From Octopus bimaculoides (Eukaryota), in the NCBI RefSeq assembly GCF_001194135.2, contig NC_068994.1:903441-967440 (forward strand): 64,000 bases of DNA. The letters are read 5' to 3'. Numbering within the stretch: the stretch's first letter is position 1; each line of letters starts with the position of its first letter. Position numbers and translations under genes: made by a program. This document shows, in pieces, positions 3,979 through 49,637 of this stretch. The notes beneath the pieces are model-generated. The model was not told the origin of the DNA. It worked only from the letters and a program-made list of their open reading frames with translations, and ran no database searches.

Positions 3979-4300
3979 AAGAGGACAACATTGCTATAAG
4001 CAGGTCAGAGGTTAGGGAGCTGACAACACTTCTGTGACCACTTTATATAATGGAGAGTTGAGAGGACAACATTTCTGTGATCAGCTTTTACAATAGGGAG
4101 ATAAGAGGGCAACGTTTCTGTGCCAAGTTTATATAGTAGGGAGTTGAGAGGATAACATATCTGTGAGAAGTTTATATAATAGGGAGTTGACTGGACAAAA
4201 TTTCTGTGACTGGTGTATATAATAGGGAGTTGACAGGACAATATTTCTGTGATACATTTATATAACAGGGTTTATGTAACAGGGAGTTGACAGGACAACG
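3979..4300. repeat. 43-bp minisatellite, about 7 degenerate copies
   Basis: TCTGTG recurs at 4031, 4074, 4117, 4160, 4203 and 4246; unit approximates ATATAATAGGGAGTTGACAGGACAACATTTCTGTGA.... Confidence 0.92.
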
Positions 4301-4899
4301 GTAGGTTGACCTGTTTGTAGATTAGGGTGTTGATGGTACATCATTGCAGTGATCTGTCTATTTTAAAGTCAAATTTTTGAACAATATGTTCTATGTTGAA
4401 TTTATGAAAAAAAATTAAATTTTGTAAACAAAAATTAGTGTCATGCTGAATTTGTAAATTTTAACATGAATAGAATTGTATCTATATTATACTGGAAACT
4501 GTGTATTCACACTTTCTAAACTTCAATTGATATGTGGTTGAAATGCATATTTATTTATTTATTTATGTGTTTCAGCCAAGTGGCTGCGGTCATGCTGGTG
4601 CACCGTTCTGTATCTTTCTTGCATAACATTACACCAGGATGAAGGAAACAATATCTTCTACATTTGCTGCTGTCCATTGATTTTGGAAATAGTTTCTCTG
4701 TTTCACAAGCAAAACCAAAGCCCTGCCTTTGACTCTTTGATAGCATAGTCCTGTTCAAAACTAAATCTCAAAAGCTTCTTTACATGATTAAGATTTTAGA
4801 TAAAAATCAGTTATCACCAAGACACAATATTATAATATTTTTGTATTATTGCTGTGTTGGTATCTTTGGAAATAATAACCCAAAAGAGAGAAACTTTAC

Positions 4900-6266
4900 A
4901 TGAACAGGTAATGAAATTGCATGGGTGTGTGGTGTGGGTGCTGAGAAGTTGTCAGTTCTGATGTGTGTGGAGTGGTGGGGGTTGGGATGTGTGAACAGGG
5001 GTGTGGGGGTAGTGGTGGGATGTGTAGGTTGAGGGGGTGGTGGTATCAATGAAGAGAGGAGGGGGGAGTTGAGTCCATATGGCACAAAGGAGCGAAGAGA
5101 GAAGATTAACTCCTGTTCACAGCAAAGGCAGGAGTATGGATGGCTCCTGTGCAAAGACAATTTGAACACAGACAGGTGTTGTAGTGAATGACCAGTAGAA
5201 GTGTCATTGCTGAGTCTGATATCTTGGAGGAGCTGTGTAAACCGGTCAGCCAAGCAGTGTCCCGTTTGACCGATGTACAGAGAAGGGCAGAAAGAGCAGG
5301 AGATGCAGTAAATGATGTTGCTAGAAGTGCAGGTAAAGGAGTTGGTGATATGATAGGGATGATGATGGGTGCCTGTGAGGATGGTGGTTTTGGAGAGGTA
5401 GAGACGAGTGTGGCAGTGTGGGCAGGAGCAAAGGAATGAGCCAGGATGGGAGGTGGGGTTAGGGAAGAAACTGTAGACCAGGAGGACATGCATGTTGTGG
5501 GATTGTTTGAAGGAGAGAAGGGGTGGGTTGGGGAAGATGTGTGAGGTACAGGGGTTAGAGTGGAGTTGCCGGAAGGCATGGAGAATAGTGTGTTGGAGGG
5601 GAGGGTAGAGGGGTGGTAGGTGAGGGAAAACGGGGAACAGGCAATGGCAGGGTGGGTGCGGAGAGAGAGAGAGCAGAAGCACGGTCCATGAACCGTGCTC
5701 TGCCAAGGGCTGTGTACATAGTGGTGAGGGTATATCCATAAATGATGAAGCATCAGCCATGAGTTGAGACTGAGTTTCAGTCATGGTTGTCACTGCAGAG
5801 CCTGCAAAGACAGAGGAATTGGGTGTAGGGAATGAAGAGTTTGGTGTGGGTAGGGTAGGAGAAGTTAAGGTAGGAGTGTGAGTGGGTATGCTTGTAGTGG
5901 ATGGAGGTAGTGAGAGCAGAGTGGTATATGTTGACAGAAATGTCGAGAAATCCGATGAAAGTGTTGGAAATAGCGCAGAATTTGAGAGCAGGATGGAAGG
6001 ATTGGACAAAGGAGAGGAAGGAGTCTAGTTGTTCGCGGGAGAGTGAGGTTGCACCGATACAGACATCAATATAACAGCCATATAGTTTGGGAGTGGGACC
6101 AGTGAATCGTTAGAATATTTGTGTCTCAATGTAGCCAGCGAACAGGTTCACATAGTTGGGGCCCATTCTCATGACCTGTTGGTAAAAATCCCCCACAAAC
6201 GAGAAGCAGTTGAGGGAGAGAACAAGTTCGGCCAGATGAATAAGTGTAGAGGTGTCAGGTTGGGGA
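4900..6266 (-). mobile_element. Penelope-like retroelement relic (RT plus GIY-YIG endonuclease), 5'-truncated and pseudogenised
   Basis: Minus frames give LIHLAELVLSLNCFSF, RMGPNYVNLFAGYIE, LYGCYIDVCIG (YIDD changed to YIDV at 6073-6062), FHPALKF, FLDISV, and FTCTSSNIIYCISCSFCPSLYIGQTG...EQELIFSLRSFVPYGLN. Stops and frameshifts are present. Confidence 0.92.
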
Positions 6267-34858: not shown

Positions 34859-35228
34859 ATGATCGATAAGCAGGTAACAGCGGCAGATGACATCAAGATG
34901 CTCTCACCTGATAGGTGTGCTCACATCCATGGATCTACTGGCCATGCTGCCACAGCAGCTTCTTCATCTTCAGGCCATTCTGCCACAACATCCTCCTCCA
35001 CCACCACTTCCTCCTCCACCTCATCGTCATCATCATCATCATCATCGTCATCGTCATCATCATCTTCATCATCAGCTAATCCTCAAACACCCACATCAAC
35101 TACTCTGGAAATGGCTGACATGCAAACTGCTGGCGAAAGTGGAGGAGTACAATTGGCCACGACTGCAGCTGGAGACACAGCTCTACTAACTGCTGACTTT
35201 AAGAAAAAATATGATAGTGTTGTTGCAG
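34859..35228 (+). CDS. ER: ER coding exon 1 (A/B domain, Ser/Thr-rich with poly-Ser)
   Basis: Acceptor tttaatttcag at 34854, ATG at 34859, donor GCAG|GTTAGT. Phase 1 joins the next exon as ...[12 protein letters not shown]. Confidence 0.85.
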
Positions 35229-39996: not shown

Positions 39997-42900
39997 AATA
40001 TTCTATAATTATANNNNNNNNNNAGTTGCAATGTACATCCGAGAAGATGTCACACCCCTACTACTCCTATCACACTCAAACTCTGTCTGTGACACGTTAA
40101 TAGTACACATAAAAAACCAATTGATGTAGTTGTATGCTCAACATACCATTCACTAAATACTGCAAAGCAGGAGGGTAAAATTGAGGATAGCCTCAGACAC
40201 ATAGAAGAGGTCTTGACAAATCTGGACCAANNNNNNNNNNGCTTCACCACATACCGAATTTAGAAATAGGAGTTAAAAATTCCTTTTCTAATACTATAAA
40301 AATCTAGAGTATGCCGTACTCCGAACAGACAGAAAAGGCAGAAGTCATGGCGGAGTTGCAATGTACATCCGAGAAGATGTCACACCCCTACTACTCCTAT
40401 CACACTCAAACTCTGTCTGTGACACGTTAATAGTACACATAAAAAACCAATTGATGTAGTTGTATGCTCAACATACCATTCACTAAATACTGCAAAGCAG
40501 GAGGGTAAAATTGAGGATAGCCTCAGACACATAGAAGAGGTCTTGACAAATCTGGACCAACACATCAATATACTTTTCCTAGGCGACTTTAACCTCCCAA
40601 ATGTTAAATGGCCTGAAGGTCACATCTTCTCTGGGATGTCACTGCATGAACAAAGCCAGACAAAATCTTTGTTAGAACTCTCCAGCATGTTGTTCATGGA
40701 ACAAGTGATACTCCAACCAACCAGGGGAAGCAATATTTTAGATATCTGCTTCACAAACAATGTGAGTCTAATCCATAATGTGAAAGTAACACCTCTTTCA
40801 GATCATAACATTATAGAATTAACAATACATGGTCGTAGACAACCCACTGACACCCACTCCATCAGGAGGACTCAAGCCATATCCAACCTGAATTTCCACA
40901 GGGCAGACTGGAAGTCATTTTCTGTCAACCATACAAAATATATGCACCAAATATGTGCCAGAAAGAAAGGCCAGCAAACATGCCAATAAATGTAACTGAG
41001 GGTGTCAAGATACCTACATTGCTAAAAATAAGAGCTAAAATGCTCTAATGCATGGTTGTTTATATATTTATTTTTTTTATACACATCAGTGGTTCACTAA
41101 ATCATCTCATACATTTTTATGGTAAATACACATATGTTGTCAGTGGATTAAGCCTGGAATTAGCTGAATGAGAAGTCCTTACTGAAGAGGCTCTGGAAAT
41201 AGCCAAAACTGAACTTTCAATCTAGGGAATTCTCGAGTTGGTGTTTTCGGGCAATTGCAGCCCAGTGCATTTCTTTCGCTCCAGTTTCATGATAAAACTG
41301 TCAGTCAGTGACTACGACAGCTTCCTCTGCTACCGGATTATCTAAGTAACTATCTTCTGCTGTACTTCAACAGATATTTTGATAATTTCACTGACTCTTT
41401 CCTAATGGACCAGGTGCATTCCCTCCCTTCGTATTCTTAATTGTGCTTGCTACGATATTGATGTCCACTTCAATGGCTCATCTCTCTGTTACATCTTCTT
41501 CAGGTAGACTCTCACCTGAAGACTATACATTCTCTTCATTTAACAGCTTCTCATAGCCTCTCATATGAGCAGTTCTATGACTCTTCCACATTAGTAGTGT
41601 CAGAATTAGCAGATGTAATGTTATCACTCTTGATACACTTATCTACGAATATGTTTCAGTTCTCTTTGCTACACTGCCTTGCAATCAGGAATACCCCCTT
41701 AAATATATGGTCATTGCAGTATGTGTGTGTGTGTGTGCATTTGTGCACATGCTCATAGACACACATGAACAAACACACACACAAGCTTATGAAGAAATTG
41801 TTTGAATTTGATTGAAGAGAAATACAAAGATTGAGAGAGATTGGTTGGAAATTTTGATGCGTGTAAAAAATAGATTTATGACGGTGGAGGTAAAATGGAG
41901 ATTGATTGTATCTCACACACAATGTTGTGTGAAGTTTGCAAGATTAAGCAACATAGGACTTGTAACAGAGCAAAGACTAGGACAGGTCCCCCCACCTCAC
42001 TCACTCTTAATCAATCTAAGTCACTTGTGAGGTAGACAAACATTTTCAGAGGCCTGACTTGCAGTCAAATCTGTTGGTCCAAATCAGGTTTAACAGGGTG
42101 TATTAGCAAGTCACATAGCAGTGGTAATCAACAAATTCATTCAAGAGCTGCAACACAACTTGCAGATAAGCAACAGGTCTAAAAAGTTAGTGTAGAGTCC
42201 ATGACAAAGAGGTAGTCCATCGGGGGAAGGGGGTCATACACAGCAGTCACCAACCACAAAGCACGTGTGTGTGTGTGTGTGTGTGCATGTGCCTACATAT
42301 TGTATATGCATATATTTATTTATTTGAAGTTGAGGTTTCATTTTGTTACAACTCAGACTGTATAAATAAGCAAGAATAATGAATGATTTAATAAAAAAAC
42401 TCTGTACACATACAAATATTCAAAACTGTATAGTGTAATGAGTAAATTAAACTAGTCTGTATTTCTTTCTGTGCCATCATTATAAAGAATAATACATCTA
42501 CCCATCAGATGAGAACATAGCTGCCTCCTTCCAGATATGTTGAATGGATTGTTATGATGTGATTTCAGCTTGTATTTAGAGTTAGTGACTCTCTAGAGAT
42601 GTCTCAGTCTCCCCTTTTGTTCACAGCCTATTTTGGCTGCTGTAATGAGGCTCTATTAACATAAATATTACATGTTGTGAATGTGTTTTCAATTGATAAA
42701 GTGTGTGTTGGTGTATCATCTTCTGTTGTAGGTAGTAGCACGGGTAACACTACCAGGTTATGTCAGGTGTGTGATGACAATGCTTCAGGATTTCATTATG
42801 GTGTATGGTCTTGTGAAGGTTGTAAAGCTTTCTTTAAACGAAGTATTCAAGGTAAGTGATTTAGTTTCTCATTCTTGATTCTCCTTTTTGCTACAGTAAT

Positions 42901-45900
42901 TGTCTTTGATGCTGGTAAAGTTTAATGTGGTTGTGATACAACTAGTATCTGACTTGTGGCAGAATTGTTTTCCAATGTGATCTGAGGAATAAACCAGTAT
43001 CTGGTCATGATTCAAAAATGTTGAAGAAGATCCCTTAAGGTTAGTTCTTCATTTAGATTGGGATTGTTTTCTTTTGTTGATTTATGAGTCACTTAACTCC
43101 TTTGGTTGGTTCATCTGATGGACTAACAAACAAGAACTATCTCTATGTATTTGCTTGTAAACCTGTATTTTATGGTAACTGTCTGAATGTTGTTCAAAAA
43201 AGTATCAGGACTGGTGCTATAAGACACAAAACTACAGCACATATCAACTTGGCATTTAATCCCTCTTCTGAAGCCACACACTTTATCTAGCATTGTTTCC
43301 ATTGATGGAAGCTTTGTTTTCCCATGGCATGCAGGTGTCAATGAATGGTGGAAAAACCAAATCCAAGCTTCTCTGCTAGTTCCTCAACAGTTACAATGGG
43401 ATTTTTTTCCACCAGGGTTTGCAGGATGTCCTCGTCAAGCTCTACAGTTCTTTGAGGACAAGGGTTGTCTTCTAGGCTGTAGTTTCTGACTCAGAATTTC
43501 TGGAACCACCGTCGACACTGGCTTACGCTTATTGTCCAATCCCCATATACTGCATTTAATATTCCTCCCACTTTCCATTGCATTGTTGCCTTTACTGAAC
43601 TCATAAAGCAAAATATGCTGAATATGCTCCTTTGTCACTTCCATTATACCTTTGAAAAAATAACTATTAAAATCGAACTGCACTCTTCAAAACTTGCACT
43701 AAGAATAAGTACAAGGTAAAATTACTACCTGCTTTTATAGCAAGTTGATGCAGGTAGTTTATCCTGTCCCCCTCTGACTTTTAGTTCATACAATTGAAAG
43801 AAACTATTACTTATGGGATGACCCACTACATATATATAACTTAATCATATACCGATCACATTGTACTGGAATATGGGGGAAAGTACTCTTTATTGATATG
43901 GAATATGGAATAACTATGCCATCCCACAATATTAAACATTAAATTAACTTTATACAAAAGAGGAAACAACCGTTCTATCCTATCGTAATGACCTGAAAAT
44001 AATACGGTAATGCTTTTAGTGAATTGTACTTTTGATGTTTAGTGGGCAGGGGGGATTTTGTTTGAACTTGATTACTTAATTCTTTATTATTTCAACTTTT
44101 TTCTGATTTCATTGTGGAATATTTTTTCTGCAGTTGTTCACATTTTCTATTTGTTTGTGTTTAGGTCCAGTTGATTATGTGTGTCCTGCCACTAACAGCT
44201 GTACAATTGATAAACATCGACGTAAGAGTTGCCAAGCTTGTCGCTTACGCAAATGTTATGAAGTGGGCATGAATAAAGGTAAGATTGTTAGCCCCCAACT
44301 GATGCTTCTATTTCTTGGTCAGTAGAGACCCAATTCCTTTTGTTCTCTTAACTTCACAACAATGATAGTTTGTTGATGCAATTGAAGCATTCTATTGTTT
44401 TGGAAAGATAATGGATTACAAGATACACACACACATACACACACAGCCATTTGTTTACGGCTGTTTCATAATCTTGTTATATAATAGATGTTACATCAAC
44501 ACACATATAAATTATACATATACACACAAAGGTGTATACATATATATATATATATATAGGTTGTATATATATCTGCATATATATTGTTGCTTTGATTTGC
44601 AGGTAGCCAAAGGAAGGAGAGAAAAAACAGTTCCAACCAAACTAAAGTAAAACGAAGCAGTGCCGACTTCTCAGATTCAACAGTGAATTCAACCAGTGGA
44701 AACCAACCAGCAAAGGTTTACTACCCTAATCCTCTCTTTGTGCTGTGTGTGCATATGGCTGACCATTCTATCATGTTTCAGTGAAATGTTATAATGCCAT
44801 CTATTTTAGTGTTTATATTATTCAATGTACAGCCATATAAGTAACAAATCCATATAACTGGTGGATGTATATAACCAATAGAATTATTCAATGAATAGAT
44901 CCATATAAGCATTTGATCCATATGACAATAAAACCAGCTGACCCTATACATCCATGTGACTCAAAGATCCTATCAAATAAGCAAGTTAACCTAAGCCTTG
45001 TCCCCTAATTACCATCACATACCGTGTTTAGTGAAATACTTTCAACGTTATCTTGTTTCTATTTCAGAGTCAGCGTTTATCAAAGTCTTCCTCTTTGGTT
45101 GAAGAACTCTCCAAGAATGATTTTGCCGTCCCTGAATGCAAGCTGAATCCCAGTATTCCTCTGACCAAAAATTATATTTTACAGCTTCTGATCCAGGTTG
45201 CAGATAAAGATTTAGTTCAGTTGATAAACTGGGCCAAACACATACCTGGTGAGTTGATGTTTGCTTACATTCACCACAACAGTGGCAGTGGCAGTGTTTG
45301 CTAACGTTGACATGCGATCATTGAATATTCCTTTTCTTCATCAGCATTGGCTGCGAAATATCCAGTTATTTGGCCTGGAATTTTACTGAAGTCAAAACTC
45401 ATCTCAGTGTTTTTGCTGTGAGTTCGTTCCCAATTCGGTGAGAGTAAAACAGATACTAAAGAAGGGCATCTTTTATCTTTTACTTGTTTCAGTCATTAGA
45501 GTGTGGCCATGCTGGGCACTGCTTTGAAGAATCAAGCCCAGAACTTACATTTTTTGTAAGTTTTGTAATTATTGTATTGGATGCTTTTGCTAAACTACTA
45601 AGTTACAGGGACAAACACAGACACACTACTATAGCCTGAGGCCATAGGTTCCACACAGTGGGACTAAACCTAAAGTACAGTCCAGTGGGAACTGGAACCA
45701 GGTGGTTGAGAAACAAACTTCACACAGCCACCCATGAGCCTACTCAGCGAGACATGATAAAATGAACAGGAATAATAGGCTGAGTTGGCAAAGAGTATGG
45801 AGGGAACTTACACAGCCTTAAAGCTATATTTATAGAATGCTTGGACTAGCTACTTCCAAGCAGTAGCTTTGAATATAAAATATTTTGACCCAAAGCCTCA

Positions 45901-46119: not shown

Positions 46120-48365
46120 TTCTATATACTAACTATTATATAACTAAGATCTCTAACTTTATAAATCTCTAATAATCATTAGTAGAACAAAATTATTTTC
46201 CCATTATCTTAAAGCCAATCACCTATCCTTTGTTGACTAACTTTAGTCTTCTTTTTGTCTTTTGTTTCTCTTTCAATAGGTTATGCTGATTTATCTTTGT
46301 CTGACCAAGTACATCTTATAGAATGCTGTTGGATGGAGTTAGTGTTACTTAACTGTGCATATCGTTCCATGGAATATGAGGGAAAACGGCTTGCCTTTGC
46401 CTCAAATCTAATCTTAGAAAATTAAGTATTTCATTTGTTCTTTAAAATGTTTCGAGTTTAGCATTCAGATTACTTTGTCAGATGTAATGTTTATTTATTC
46501 ACATTGTTTAGAATTAATCTTGTGTTATCTTGGTGATGTGATTGTTTACTTTTAGAATGACATTGTAGGACAGATGTTTTATGTTCAAAATGACCAGGTC
46601 CAGGCTCTAACATCAGAAACATTTTGGGCCCCCGATATGGTCAGTTTAAATGCTAAATGGGTAAAGTTAGCATTCCCTGTTTGATGGTATATCTACCATT
46701 GCATGTTAGATTGTCTGGGATGCACCTCACTGACTTTCTTCTCATTGAAGTAGCTATCTAACTTCAACAGAGAGAGAAAGAGATATGATGTGGTTGAGGT
46801 AATATACCATTGGATTCAAGTTCAAACAGCTTACTTTGCATGAGTCATCCTCCTTTATATTGTCACCTACTGGCTTGTGATGTCTGTTTAGGGTTAGTGG
46901 TGAGGTGTTGTTGTGTGTGTGACGTTTTTTGTGGGTTGACAGTGAAAGGTAAAGTGAGAATATAATGTTTGATTCAGATATATCACATATTTCTGAAATA
47001 TATGTACAAATGGAAGAGAAATTCAACCACCATTTCATACTTTGAACAATGATAATGACAACAAAATGCACAGTATTGAATTCTATATTGGTTATAGCAA
47101 CCACTGTCTGATAGTTTGACAAAGATGGAGTTTATGATTCAACTGTCAATGTTTTATGAAACTTTAGCAACTACAGTTTCCTACGTTTGTCTTAGTTATC
47201 TATTTTCATTGTGAAGATTATTTCCATTCTTGTTTCAGGCACCACTGGGAGATTCTAGGAATGACCCAGATCTTGGAACAAGTAGCAGCTGTTAGTGAGC
47301 AACTTTTACAGTTTGGTATTAATCGAGAAGAATTGTTATTACTTGAAGCTACTATCTTAGTAAATGCAGGTATGTTGGTGACTTTACATGATTACTAACT
47401 CAGAACCAATCCATTTTATTACATTATTAATGTAATTTACCTGACATACATGTGGCCTACTGTCTGATGTGTGTTGTACATTACAGACATATTGTACACC
47501 TCAAATGTGCCATAAAAATGCCTGTCAGACAATGTATTATGTATGTGAGATATACTGTATGACACATCAGACATACTATATGACGCATCAGACATACTGT
47601 TCACACATCACTCATGTGTCATATAGTATGTCTAATGTATGTCCTACACTATGCCTGATGTGTTGTACAGTATCTTTGATATGTGTCCTACAGTATGTTT
47701 GATGTGTTTGTGCAGTCTGTCTGGTGTGTGTTGTATAGTATATCTGATATGTCATATTGTATGTCTGATGCAAATCGTAGTGTATAGTCATACTGTATGA
47801 CACACGTCAGACATAGGNNNNNNNNNNNNNNNNNNNNNNNNNNNNNNNNNNNNNNNNNNNNNNNNNNNNNNNNNNNNNNNNNNNNNNNNNNNNNNNNNNN
47901 NNNNNNNNNNNNNNNNNNNNNNNNNNNNNNNNNNNNNNNNNNNNNNNNNNNNNNNNNNNNNNNNNNNNNNNNNNNNNNNNNNNNNNNNNNNNNNNNNNNN
48001 NNNNNNNNNNNNNNNNNNNNNNNNNNNNNNNNNNNNNNNNNNNNNNNNNNNNNNNNNNNNNNNNNNNNNNNNNNNNNNNNNNNNNNNNNNNNNNNNNNNN
48101 NNNNNNNNNNNNNNNNNNNNNNNNNNNNNNNNNNNNNGATACTGCCCAGAAGTATCACCCAGATAACCCGCGGCATGTTCCGTCCGCCCTACTGCTGCTC
48201 AGTCATGTACGTCAAGCCTCTGATCGTAGTATCATTTATCTACAGAAACAGAAAGACGAAGGTCATGTGACATTTTGTGAACTGATAACTGAGATGCTAG
48301 AAGCGCAGAACAGTTCTAACGATATTGTAGCACCCAGAGCAGATGTTATTGGAATGGGCACTTGA
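34859..48365 (+). CDS. ER: Estrogen receptor (molluscan ER, NR3A-type nuclear receptor), multi-exon CDS; part of the last exon lies in the 47818-48137 N gap
   Basis: Spliced translation gives two C4 zinc fingers ([31 protein letters not shown] / [30 protein letters not shown]), an ER-type P-box CEGCKA (ERR has CEACKA), the LBD signature [27 protein letters not shown] and the AF-2 helix ELITEMLEA. All exon phases are compatible. Confidence 0.96.
38398..38572 (-). mobile_element. tRNA-derived SINE with a Meta/CORE-like central box
   Basis: Minus strand has a tRNA-like head (GCATGGCTTTGTGGTTAGGGTGTTGGACTCATG) and the box TTGTGTTCTTGAGCAAAACACTTCATTTCAC. Confidence 0.7.
38572..38710. repeat. Degenerate 26-bp minisatellite, about 5 copies
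   Basis: GTTA(C) recurs at 38587, 38613, 38638, 38664 and 38690. Confidence 0.7.
40290..40930 (+). mobile_element. LINE (CR1/L2-like) apurinic endonuclease relic in ER intron 1
   Basis: [18 protein letters not shown], then a frameshift at the A run near 40441, then [36 protein letters not shown] and NFHRADW. Confidence 0.92.
42732..42851 (+). CDS. ER: ER exon, first zinc finger of the DBD
   Basis: ttgtag| acceptor and CAAG|GTAAGT donor; encodes [31 protein letters not shown]. Confidence 0.97.
43190..43740 (-). mobile_element. Internally deleted mariner-like element in ER intron 2
   Basis: [22 protein letters not shown] is a mariner N-terminal HTH start; a frameshifted continuation joins directly to a C-terminal-like segment. 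Confidence 0.75.
44165..44278 (+). CDS. ER: ER exon, second zinc finger of the DBD
   Basis: tgtttag| acceptor and AAAG|GTAAGA donor; encodes [37 protein letters not shown]. Confidence 0.97.
44603..44715 (+). CDS. ER: ER exon, hinge
   Basis: tttgcag| acceptor and AAAG|GTTTAC donor; encodes [37 protein letters not shown], phase 1 to 0. Confidence 0.88.
45068..45248 (+). CDS. ER: ER exon, hinge and LBD helix 3
   Basis: atttcag| acceptor and CCTG|GTGAGT donor; encodes SQRLSK...[20 protein letters not shown]. Confidence 0.95.
46280..46421 (+). CDS. ER: ER exon, LBD helices 4-5 and beta-turn; ends at a non-canonical TT donor
   Basis: tcaatag| acceptor; encodes [46 protein letters not shown]. The next exon needs phase 2, which places the donor at AA|TTAAGT. 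Confidence 0.9.
47239..47369 (+). CDS. ER: ER exon, LBD helices 6-8
   Basis: tgtttcag| acceptor and GCAG|GTATGT donor; encodes [43 protein letters not shown]. Confidence 0.95.
47440..47817. repeat. Degenerate direct and inverted repeat block (CATCAGACATAC / GTATGTCTGATG) next to the gap
   Basis: 47565-47584 is the reverse complement of 47751-47770 at 19/20; further direct copies at 47585-47597 and 47788-47815. Confidence 0.8.
47818..48137. other. Assembly gap (320 N) hiding the acceptor and 5' part of the ER terminal exon
   Basis: N run; the reading frame resumes mid-LBD immediately after it. Confidence 0.95.
48138..48365 (+). CDS. ER: ER terminal coding exon (visible part), LBD helices 10-12 to stop
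   Basis: Starts at the gap edge. Reads [75 protein letters not shown] with TGA at 48363-48365. Confidence 0.93.
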   Translation, partial: DTAQKYHPDNPRHVPSALLLLSHVRQASDRSIIYLQKQKDEGHVTFCELITEMLEAQNSSNDIVAPRADVIGMGT

Positions 48366-48389
48366 GGAGGAGTGTTGCTACTAAACAAT

Positions 48390-48424
48390 CTATGAATGTG
48401 TGTTTGTGTGTGTGTGTGTGTTTA

Positions 48425-48478
<54 letters not shown>

Positions 48479-48632
48479 TTATGTACATATATACATTCAA
48501 ACATATACACACACACACATAAATCTGTGTCTCTAACCATAAATGTGCATATATACCTATATATACAAACATATATATACTAACATGTATATAATACACA
48601 AATATACATACACACTCACACATTTGTATTTA

Positions 48633-49380: not shown

Positions 49381-49429
<49 letters not shown>

Positions 49430-49604
49430 CACATTTGTGAATATCATATACATATATAAACACACATTTATGAATATTATACACATATGTATACATATAT
49501 TTGTGAATATTATACACATATGTATACATATATTTGTGAATATTATACACATAAGCATATATATATATATATCTACATATACATATGTACATATACATAT
49601 GTAC

Positions 49605-49637
<33 letters not shown>

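Follow-up and report, generated by a model that had tools for sequence, protein, structure and literature searches.

The closest described counterparts of the splice site reported here, the donor of intron 6 of an estrogen receptor (ER) gene in a stretch of Octopus bimaculoides DNA (RefSeq assembly GCF_001194135.2, contig NC_068994.1, forward-strand positions 903,441 to 967,440; 64,000 nt in all, hereafter the window), are natural human donors that begin with TT. Using reporters and RNA-seq, Erkelenz et al. (2018) ranked the non-canonical donors as GC > TT > AT > GA > GG > CT (PMC6280755). Natural human TT donors include those of FBXO9 (aAG/TTAAGTAT, with the slash marking the exon boundary) and ETV1 (aAG/TTAAGTtg) (PMC6280755), and the TT-AG junction of ETV1 was reported by Parada et al. 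(2014) as constitutive and annotated (PMC4176328). Accurate cleavage at +1 accompanies a second GT at +5/+6 together with less-than-maximal complementarity to U1 small nuclear RNA (snRNA); TT sites with a G at -1 are often cut at -1 too, and all high-confidence TT sites contain a GT (PMC6280755). For the human allele FANCC c.165+1G>T, residual correct cleavage at reduced efficiency has been described (Hartmann et al. 2010, as cited in PMC6280755), which documents the statement of an earlier, sequence-based note on this DNA that the FANCC site is a usable TT donor. We found that the reading frame of the octopus ER gene closes only across a TT...AG junction, and we give an even chance to the reading that its intron 6 is a genuine, used U2-type intron of the same U1-complementary TT-AG kind (TTAAGT class), spliced with reduced efficiency.

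The + strand of the window, on which all exons and splice-site elements described below lie, carries an intact ER gene of the mollusc type with 8 coding exons. The predicted product combines a C4 zinc-finger DNA-binding domain (DBD; Pfam zf-C4, E=6.6e-32) with a ligand-binding domain (LBD; Pfam Hormone_recep, E=4.1e-14), its best solved structure is the LBD of the oyster ER (4N1Y, E=5e-48), and its best named protein matches are gastropod and bivalve ERs with 61-69% identity. With this domain composition and with ERs as its nearest relatives, the predicted protein classifies as a mollusc estrogen receptor (NR3A). No named cephalopod protein was found among the matches of any search. The exons were placed by tblastn with human ESR1 and a mollusc LBD fragment, and by blastn of the cDNA of a relative (L014) against the window. 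In the resulting gene model all acceptors are AG, and GT is present at 6 of the 7 visible donors; the exceptional one follows exon 6.

Exon 6 (46280-46421) encodes a part of the LBD that ends in ...ASNLILE plus AA (phase 2) and aligns without gaps to the oyster ER 4N1Y. Bases 46417-46429 read GAAAA TT AAGTAT, with the two T's at 46422-23, and the resulting non-canonical 5' splice site AAA/TTAAGTAT (-3 to +8, 46419-46429) has T at +1 (46422). It matches the U1-complementary consensus at 8 of 11 positions, namely -2 and the contiguous stretch +2 to +8 (TAAGTAT, 7/7), which bears out the perfect U1 complement claimed in the earlier note; outside +1 the mismatches are at -1 and -3, and the complementarity to U1 is thus sub-maximal. 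The base at -1 is A, and no GT is formed at -1/+1; the next GT after the end of exon 6 is at +5/+6 (46426-46427). Intron 6 (46422-47238; 817 nt, TT...AG) ends with a polypyrimidine tract and AG acceptor, attatttccattcttgtttcag (47217-47238, AG at 47237-38), that is ...ttcttgtttcAG, after which exon 7 (47239-47369; LBD, G plus ... ILVNA; found by tblastn and blastn; donor CAG/GTATGTTG) begins with G at 47239 (G CAC CAC TGG). Joining 46421 to 47239 gives GAA AAG CAC CAC TGG (E-K-H-H-W), after which exon 7 stays in frame to its end; the TT donor at 46422 and its frame-closing junction to 47239 (ILE-K-HHW) had been given correctly, both in coordinates and in description, by the earlier note. Reading past 46421 yields AAT TAA (...ILEN-stop), and the in-frame TAA at 46423-46425 would be reached either on intron retention or on use of the GT at 46426 (...NLILEN and stop), as predicted beforehand and now confirmed by read-through translation. 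With 3 copies in the window against 5.1 expected, the octamer TTAAGTAT shows no enrichment; its sole + strand copy falls exactly on an exon end that is fixed by homology, which exceeds chance. Among the other six ER donors TAAGTAT occurs in 0/6 and TAAGT in 1/6, and neither motif is present in the two readable donors of the relative. The sequence around the site is unique and free of repeats, and the nearest assembly gap is 1.4 kb away. We found neither a U12 donor (RTATCCTT; the donor being TTAAGTAT) nor, in a scan of the whole of intron 6, the branch motif TCCTTRAY.

The junction 46421/47239 is fixed by homology from several sides. Logan RNA-seq assemblies (SRR3011302, ERR4009645) contain a full-length ER of a related species, 92% identical to the window protein (P0008, P0023-27), and its cDNA reads ...CTGATCTTGGAAAG/ACACCATTGGGAG at the junction (ILE-R-HHW; in a shorter reading ...TTGGAAAG/ACACCATTGG), collinear with the window and with one codon spanning the boundary. 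Genomic contigs of the relative (L001-8) have the acceptor ...ttttaattttcag/A CAC CAT (ttttcag/A) at the same place as in the window; upstream of 47233 the relative's intron and the window have nothing in common, which rules out an extended exon 7. The relative's genomic DNA is represented by runs such as ERR12921337 and SRR9969973. P0001, a cDNA-type open reading frame (ORF) from another mollusc, reads FILE-S-SHW at the junction, and the oyster ER 4N1Y aligns across it without gaps (LVLD-R-SSW). We enumerated all in-frame GT-AG, GC-AG and AT-AC pairs around both sites (n=51), and 0/51 give a product of the homologous length; because only 46421/47239 does so, a TT...AG intron is required. The relative's own donor for intron 6 was not found, its contigs (L001-8, L009-12) covering the flanking exons only, and no genomic ORF for its exon 6 turned up in an exhaustive search of representatives. 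Despite the 92% protein identity, the window and L014 differ to saturation at synonymous sites (pS 0.65-0.76), i.e. the two species are distant, and the collections searched contain no close comparator for the intron sequence.

The same intron can be recognized in other ER genes. Past the end of the corresponding exon, genomic ORFs of other molluscs (P0003-6, P0135-141) read ...LVLER-stop, ...LILER-F.., ...HLDR-Y.. and ...HLDK-stop, and the vertebrate ESR1-like genomic ORF P0147 reads ...FAPNLLLDR-SVC and then continues into the intron, in phase 2 and at the LLLD-R codon, in agreement with the phase-2 intron of human ESR1 (LD-R) given in the earlier note. Intron 6 is the orthologue of the ESR1 exon 5/6 intron, with the same position, the same phase 2 and the same codon after L-[DE]. 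Because the other molluscs and the vertebrate share both position and phase with a canonical G, these features of the intron are ancient and it is the T that is exceptional.

The window and the relative's cDNA were also put through a Nei-Gojobori comparison. For the 261 codons upstream of the junction, the proportions of nonsynonymous and synonymous differences are pN 0.033 and pS 0.645 (omega 0.023), and downstream of it (118 codons) pN 0.033 and pS 0.693 (omega 0.017); the synonymous sites are saturated in this comparison, hence it covers a long evolutionary span. The exons downstream of the junction are therefore constrained as tightly as the upstream ones, and since omega downstream is 0.017, the second half of the LBD is still needed. 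Such strong purifying selection (omega about 0.02) excludes an old pseudogenization or a long-standing truncation, and the T at 46422 must be a recent change, a harmless one, or no real base at all. What has been shown directly comprises the sequence, the exact positions of the exon boundaries, the orthology of intron 6 and the purifying selection on the downstream exons. Within about 1.4 kb of ER coding sequence there is no frameshift or stop, and because no other defect is present there, the local base accuracy looks good.

If intron 6 is a genuine TT-AG intron, U1 snRNA would form seven contiguous pairs with +2 to +8 (UAAGUAU) and one further pair with -2; the GT at +5/+6 could aid U1 recruitment. 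With A at -1 there would be no GT at -1/+1 to pull the cleavage one base upstream and break the frame, so that the cut between 46421 and 46422 and ligation to 47239 would produce the Lys codon AA/G and an intact LBD. Splicing would be expected to be less efficient than from a GT donor, and transcripts left unspliced or spliced at +5 would stop at the TAA (46423-25) and probably be degraded rather than serve as a regulated isoform. Both that the T is the animal's true base and that the spliceosome uses the TT donor are what we infer. The TAAGTAT context is what would be expected of a usable TT site and is unexpected for a random error or variant, which would fall into one like it in no more than a few per cent of cases. 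By our own estimate from human figures, natural TT donors, private splice alleles and consensus errors each amount to about 1e-5 per intron, and it is because the context differs while these base rates are comparable that the balance tilts toward a real TT site. The earlier note had been right to set a real TT-AG intron beside an allele or a consensus error, and both the context and the literature now lean toward a usable donor.

A number of points weigh against a functional TT donor. Most human GT>TT changes abolish splicing (PMC6280755), and the natural human TT sites have a G at -1 that may stabilize the U1 small nuclear ribonucleoprotein (snRNP), whereas in the window both -1 and -3 are mismatched. 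The read-through codons of the orthologous mollusc and vertebrate ORFs fit a purine at +1, with the next codon (F, Y, L, S or stop) starting with T (+2), and L016, which could be read at the nucleotide level, has gac aa/gtaggt, i.e. the same AA/G Lys codon with a canonical GT. Nine N gaps interrupt the 64 kb of the window, a draft scaffold, and one of them falls in the ER gene 1.4 kb downstream of the site. Our weighting rests on rough, human-derived base rates. No same-species transcript was found, the protein searches having yielded a single cephalopod-like cluster (P0008, P0023-27); in exact look-ups no same-species record matched the ORF of exon 6, that of exon 5 or an intronic ORF of 122 aa, and neither a scan of JGI metagenome proteins nor DNA-pattern scans of metagenome and prokaryote contigs detected same-species DNA. 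A query chimera of all ORFs around the donor matched only ER proteins of other species, a full-text literature search for the junction peptides and the run accessions gave no match, and the supplement of PMC3886901 lists for the Octopus vulgaris ER only an accession (Q19AB0), without sequence.

These points bear on two explanations in which the normal base of the species is G. The animal itself may have G at 46422, giving an ordinary strong donor AA/GTAAGTAT with the same Lys codon, and the T would then be a consensus or base-calling error; we consider this unlikely, though by no means negligible. It would agree with the gapped scaffold (the nine gaps include one of 320 N within the ER gene) and with the G at +1 of the orthologous mollusc and vertebrate donors (the ..ER, ..DR and ..DK ORFs and L016); reversing a single G>T would restore a perfect consensus, and the strong downstream selection fits normal splicing. 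On the other hand, substitution errors are rare in a high-coverage short-read consensus, the site is unique and 1.4 kb away from the gap, no second defect is seen in the roughly 1.4 kb of coding sequence, and the error would have had to strike by chance the gene's one donor with a full TAAGTAT. Somewhat less probable still is that the T is real but marks a null or hypomorphic allele, heterozygous or rare, that the sequenced individual carried. Essential splice variants may be expected to segregate at low frequency in outbred animals, with a haploid consensus picking one allele at random; such an allele is compatible with strong long-term selection downstream, and FANCC c.165+1G>T provides the precedent that alleles of this type persist with residual correct splicing (PMC6280755). 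However, a random variant seldom lands on a TAAGTAT donor, and a loss-of-function allele of a gene at omega about 0.02 should be strongly selected against. RNA editing was rejected as a way of rescuing the site, as the earlier note had already argued: A-to-I editing cannot make G from U.

Explanations in which the T is real and splicing takes another course fare worse. It is very improbable that the donor is dead and that the main product is a truncated receptor (DBD plus half of the LBD, ...NLILEN and stop) of a decaying gene or a new dominant-negative form. The in-frame TAA directly after exon 6 would provide for such a product, but exon 7 and the last exon are intact, omega is 0.017 downstream versus 0.023 upstream, so that the loss would have to be very recent, and the product would lack the C-terminal half of the LBD that aligns with the oyster ER 4N1Y. 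A stop upstream of a further exon junction is the standard trigger of nonsense-mediated decay, and this one precedes at least one further junction, which makes the transcript a likely target. We see equally little prospect for a different junction, be it a shifted AT..CA or TA..GG, an AT-AC or U12-type intron, a cryptic GC donor or a micro-exon. In-frame pairs of this sort do exist, namely AT-AC 46420/47175 (which adds about 20 residues) and GC-AG 46388/47239 (which deletes 11 residues), but they alter the length of a segment that is collinear with the relative's cDNA, P0001 and the oyster ER; the sequence upstream of 47233 is unlike that of the relative, the U12 motifs are absent, and one-base shifts produce dinucleotides worse than TT..AG. 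The length enumeration and the motif scan led us to reject U12-type and AT-AC introns, shifted junctions, the cryptic GC donor and a micro-exon. A more elaborate proposal, in which the TT donor has been fixed in the lineage as a throttle or regulated switch that needs enhancer proteins for efficient splicing, we regard as improbable. For the switch suggested by the earlier note, in which a truncated, dominant-negative form would replace the constitutively active ER, we found no support: nothing points to regulated retention, and the retained-intron transcript is expected to decay.

The other exons of the gene are as follows. Exon 1 (34859-35228; blastn versus L014) starts with the ATG at 34859 (MIDKQVT...), encodes a poly-Ser tract and the A/B domain and ends with the donor CAG/GTTAGTAT. 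The 84 codons upstream of MADMQ (34859-35110) are open and conserved at the protein level in the relative's cDNA (L014 1-328); the conserved N-terminus reads MIDKQVT[A/P]ADD[I/V]... and is followed by the poly-Ser tract, with (TCA)18 at 35021-35074. Because this upstream ORF is conserved in the relative's cDNA, we take the ATG at 34859 as the start of the ER; it is probably the true one, and the MADIQ start on the Logan contigs is probably a choice of the gene caller. Exon 2 (42732-42851; zinc finger 1 of the DBD; donor AAG/GTAAGTGA) was supported by tblastn with ESR1, blastn and Pfam zf-C4, and exon 3 (44165-44278; zinc finger 2; donor AAG/GTAAGATT) by tblastn, blastn and Pfam zf-C4 as well. 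Exon 4 (44603-44715; blastn and gene model) encodes the hinge, and its donor AAG/GTTTACTA (44713-44723) matches the U1 consensus at 4/11 positions, which makes it the weakest of the gene's canonical donors and, on paper, weaker than the TT site (8/11). Exon 5 (45068-45248; tblastn and blastn; donor CTG/GTGAGTTG) comprises hinge sequence and the start of the LBD. The visible part of the last exon (48138-48365) ends with ...VIGMGT and the stop codon TGA (48363-65). In the relative, a 'long' ER of 447 aa (L014 329-1672; P0008, P0024) arises since the caller read the TGA after ...GMGT as Trp (code 4); we rejected stop-codon recoding in this protein, as the contig has a plain TGA and the product ends as does P0023 (407 aa).

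The 320-N assembly gap (47818-48137) takes out the last part of intron 7 together with about 23 codons from the beginning of the last exon, which in the relative correspond to EVRRL...NALI. Tandem repeats of 21, 23 and 45 nt lie ahead of the gap (47548-47752) and probably broke the assembly. Long (TG)n/(TA)n/(CA)n microsatellites (48380-48480) come directly after the ER stop, and an AT-rich array of about 250 bp (49381-49637) is flanked by two further N gaps, the 3' untranslated region being poorly assembled. Elsewhere in the window, a 43-bp tandem repeat with about 5.8 copies (4022-4270) lies within a 2-kb stretch (4001-6000) with an exceptionally strong G-over-C skew of +0.45 and a GC content of 0.43, above that of the surroundings.

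If the T is real and used, the window holds a non-vertebrate case of a natural TT-AG intron, located in a transcription-factor gene of deep conservation, and with the -1 G seen in the human examples missing, the requirements of a TT donor would be put to a clean test by nature. Annotation pipelines limited to GT, GC and AT donors would then break or truncate the ER gene model, and the low splicing efficiency would set the dose of a mollusc receptor that is thought to be constitutively active. Should the improbable regulated switch hold, tissues or stages that lack the enhancers would retain the intron and have either no ER or a fragment of the DBD plus half of the LBD, which would compete with the constitutively active receptor at response elements; it would in addition be the first case of a natural TT donor that lacks G at -1, one for which pairing at +2 to +8 and the GT at +5/+6 suffice. 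Should the T prove to be an error or a private allele, the sole lesson is that care is needed with single-base anomalies in draft assemblies.

Among the described systems, the octopus site resembles the other ER genes, vertebrate ESR1 (exon 5/6) and mollusc ERs alike, in the intron itself, which they have in common between ...NL[IL]L[DE] and the next helix, but their readable donors have the canonical G at +1 (e.g. aa/gtaggt in L016) where the window has T. With GC-AG, AT-AC and U12-type introns it shares the principle that a departure from GT-AG is compensated by a strong match to an snRNA elsewhere; unlike them, it has the dinucleotide TT, the acceptor AG and no U12 donor or branch motif. 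Like FANCC c.165+1G>T (atG/TTAAGTAg), it has a T at +1 in an otherwise strong donor, whereas the FANCC site is a disease allele that, depending on the reporter, is partly or wholly spliced at the GT at -1, which the window lacks. The nearest counterparts are ETV1 and FBXO9: in each case a U2-type intron has TT at +1/+2, an AG acceptor, the U1-complementary TAAGT(AT) and a GT at +5/+6, and belongs to a housekeeping or transcription-factor gene whose frame needs the TT junction, and the intronic octamer of the window, TTAAGTAT, is identical to that of FBXO9. In contrast to both, the octopus site comes from a mollusc and is read from genomic sequence, and its -1 base is A and not G, hence it lacks the second GT at -1/+1; this removes both a possible additional stabilization of the U1 snRNP and the risk of mis-splicing at -1. 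Judged by its sequence features, i.e. a frame-required TT...AG, U1 complementarity and an internal GT, the site falls within the ETV1/FBXO9 class, and, if real, intron 6 would join this known but rare group of U1-complementary TT-AG introns with one new trait, the missing G at -1.

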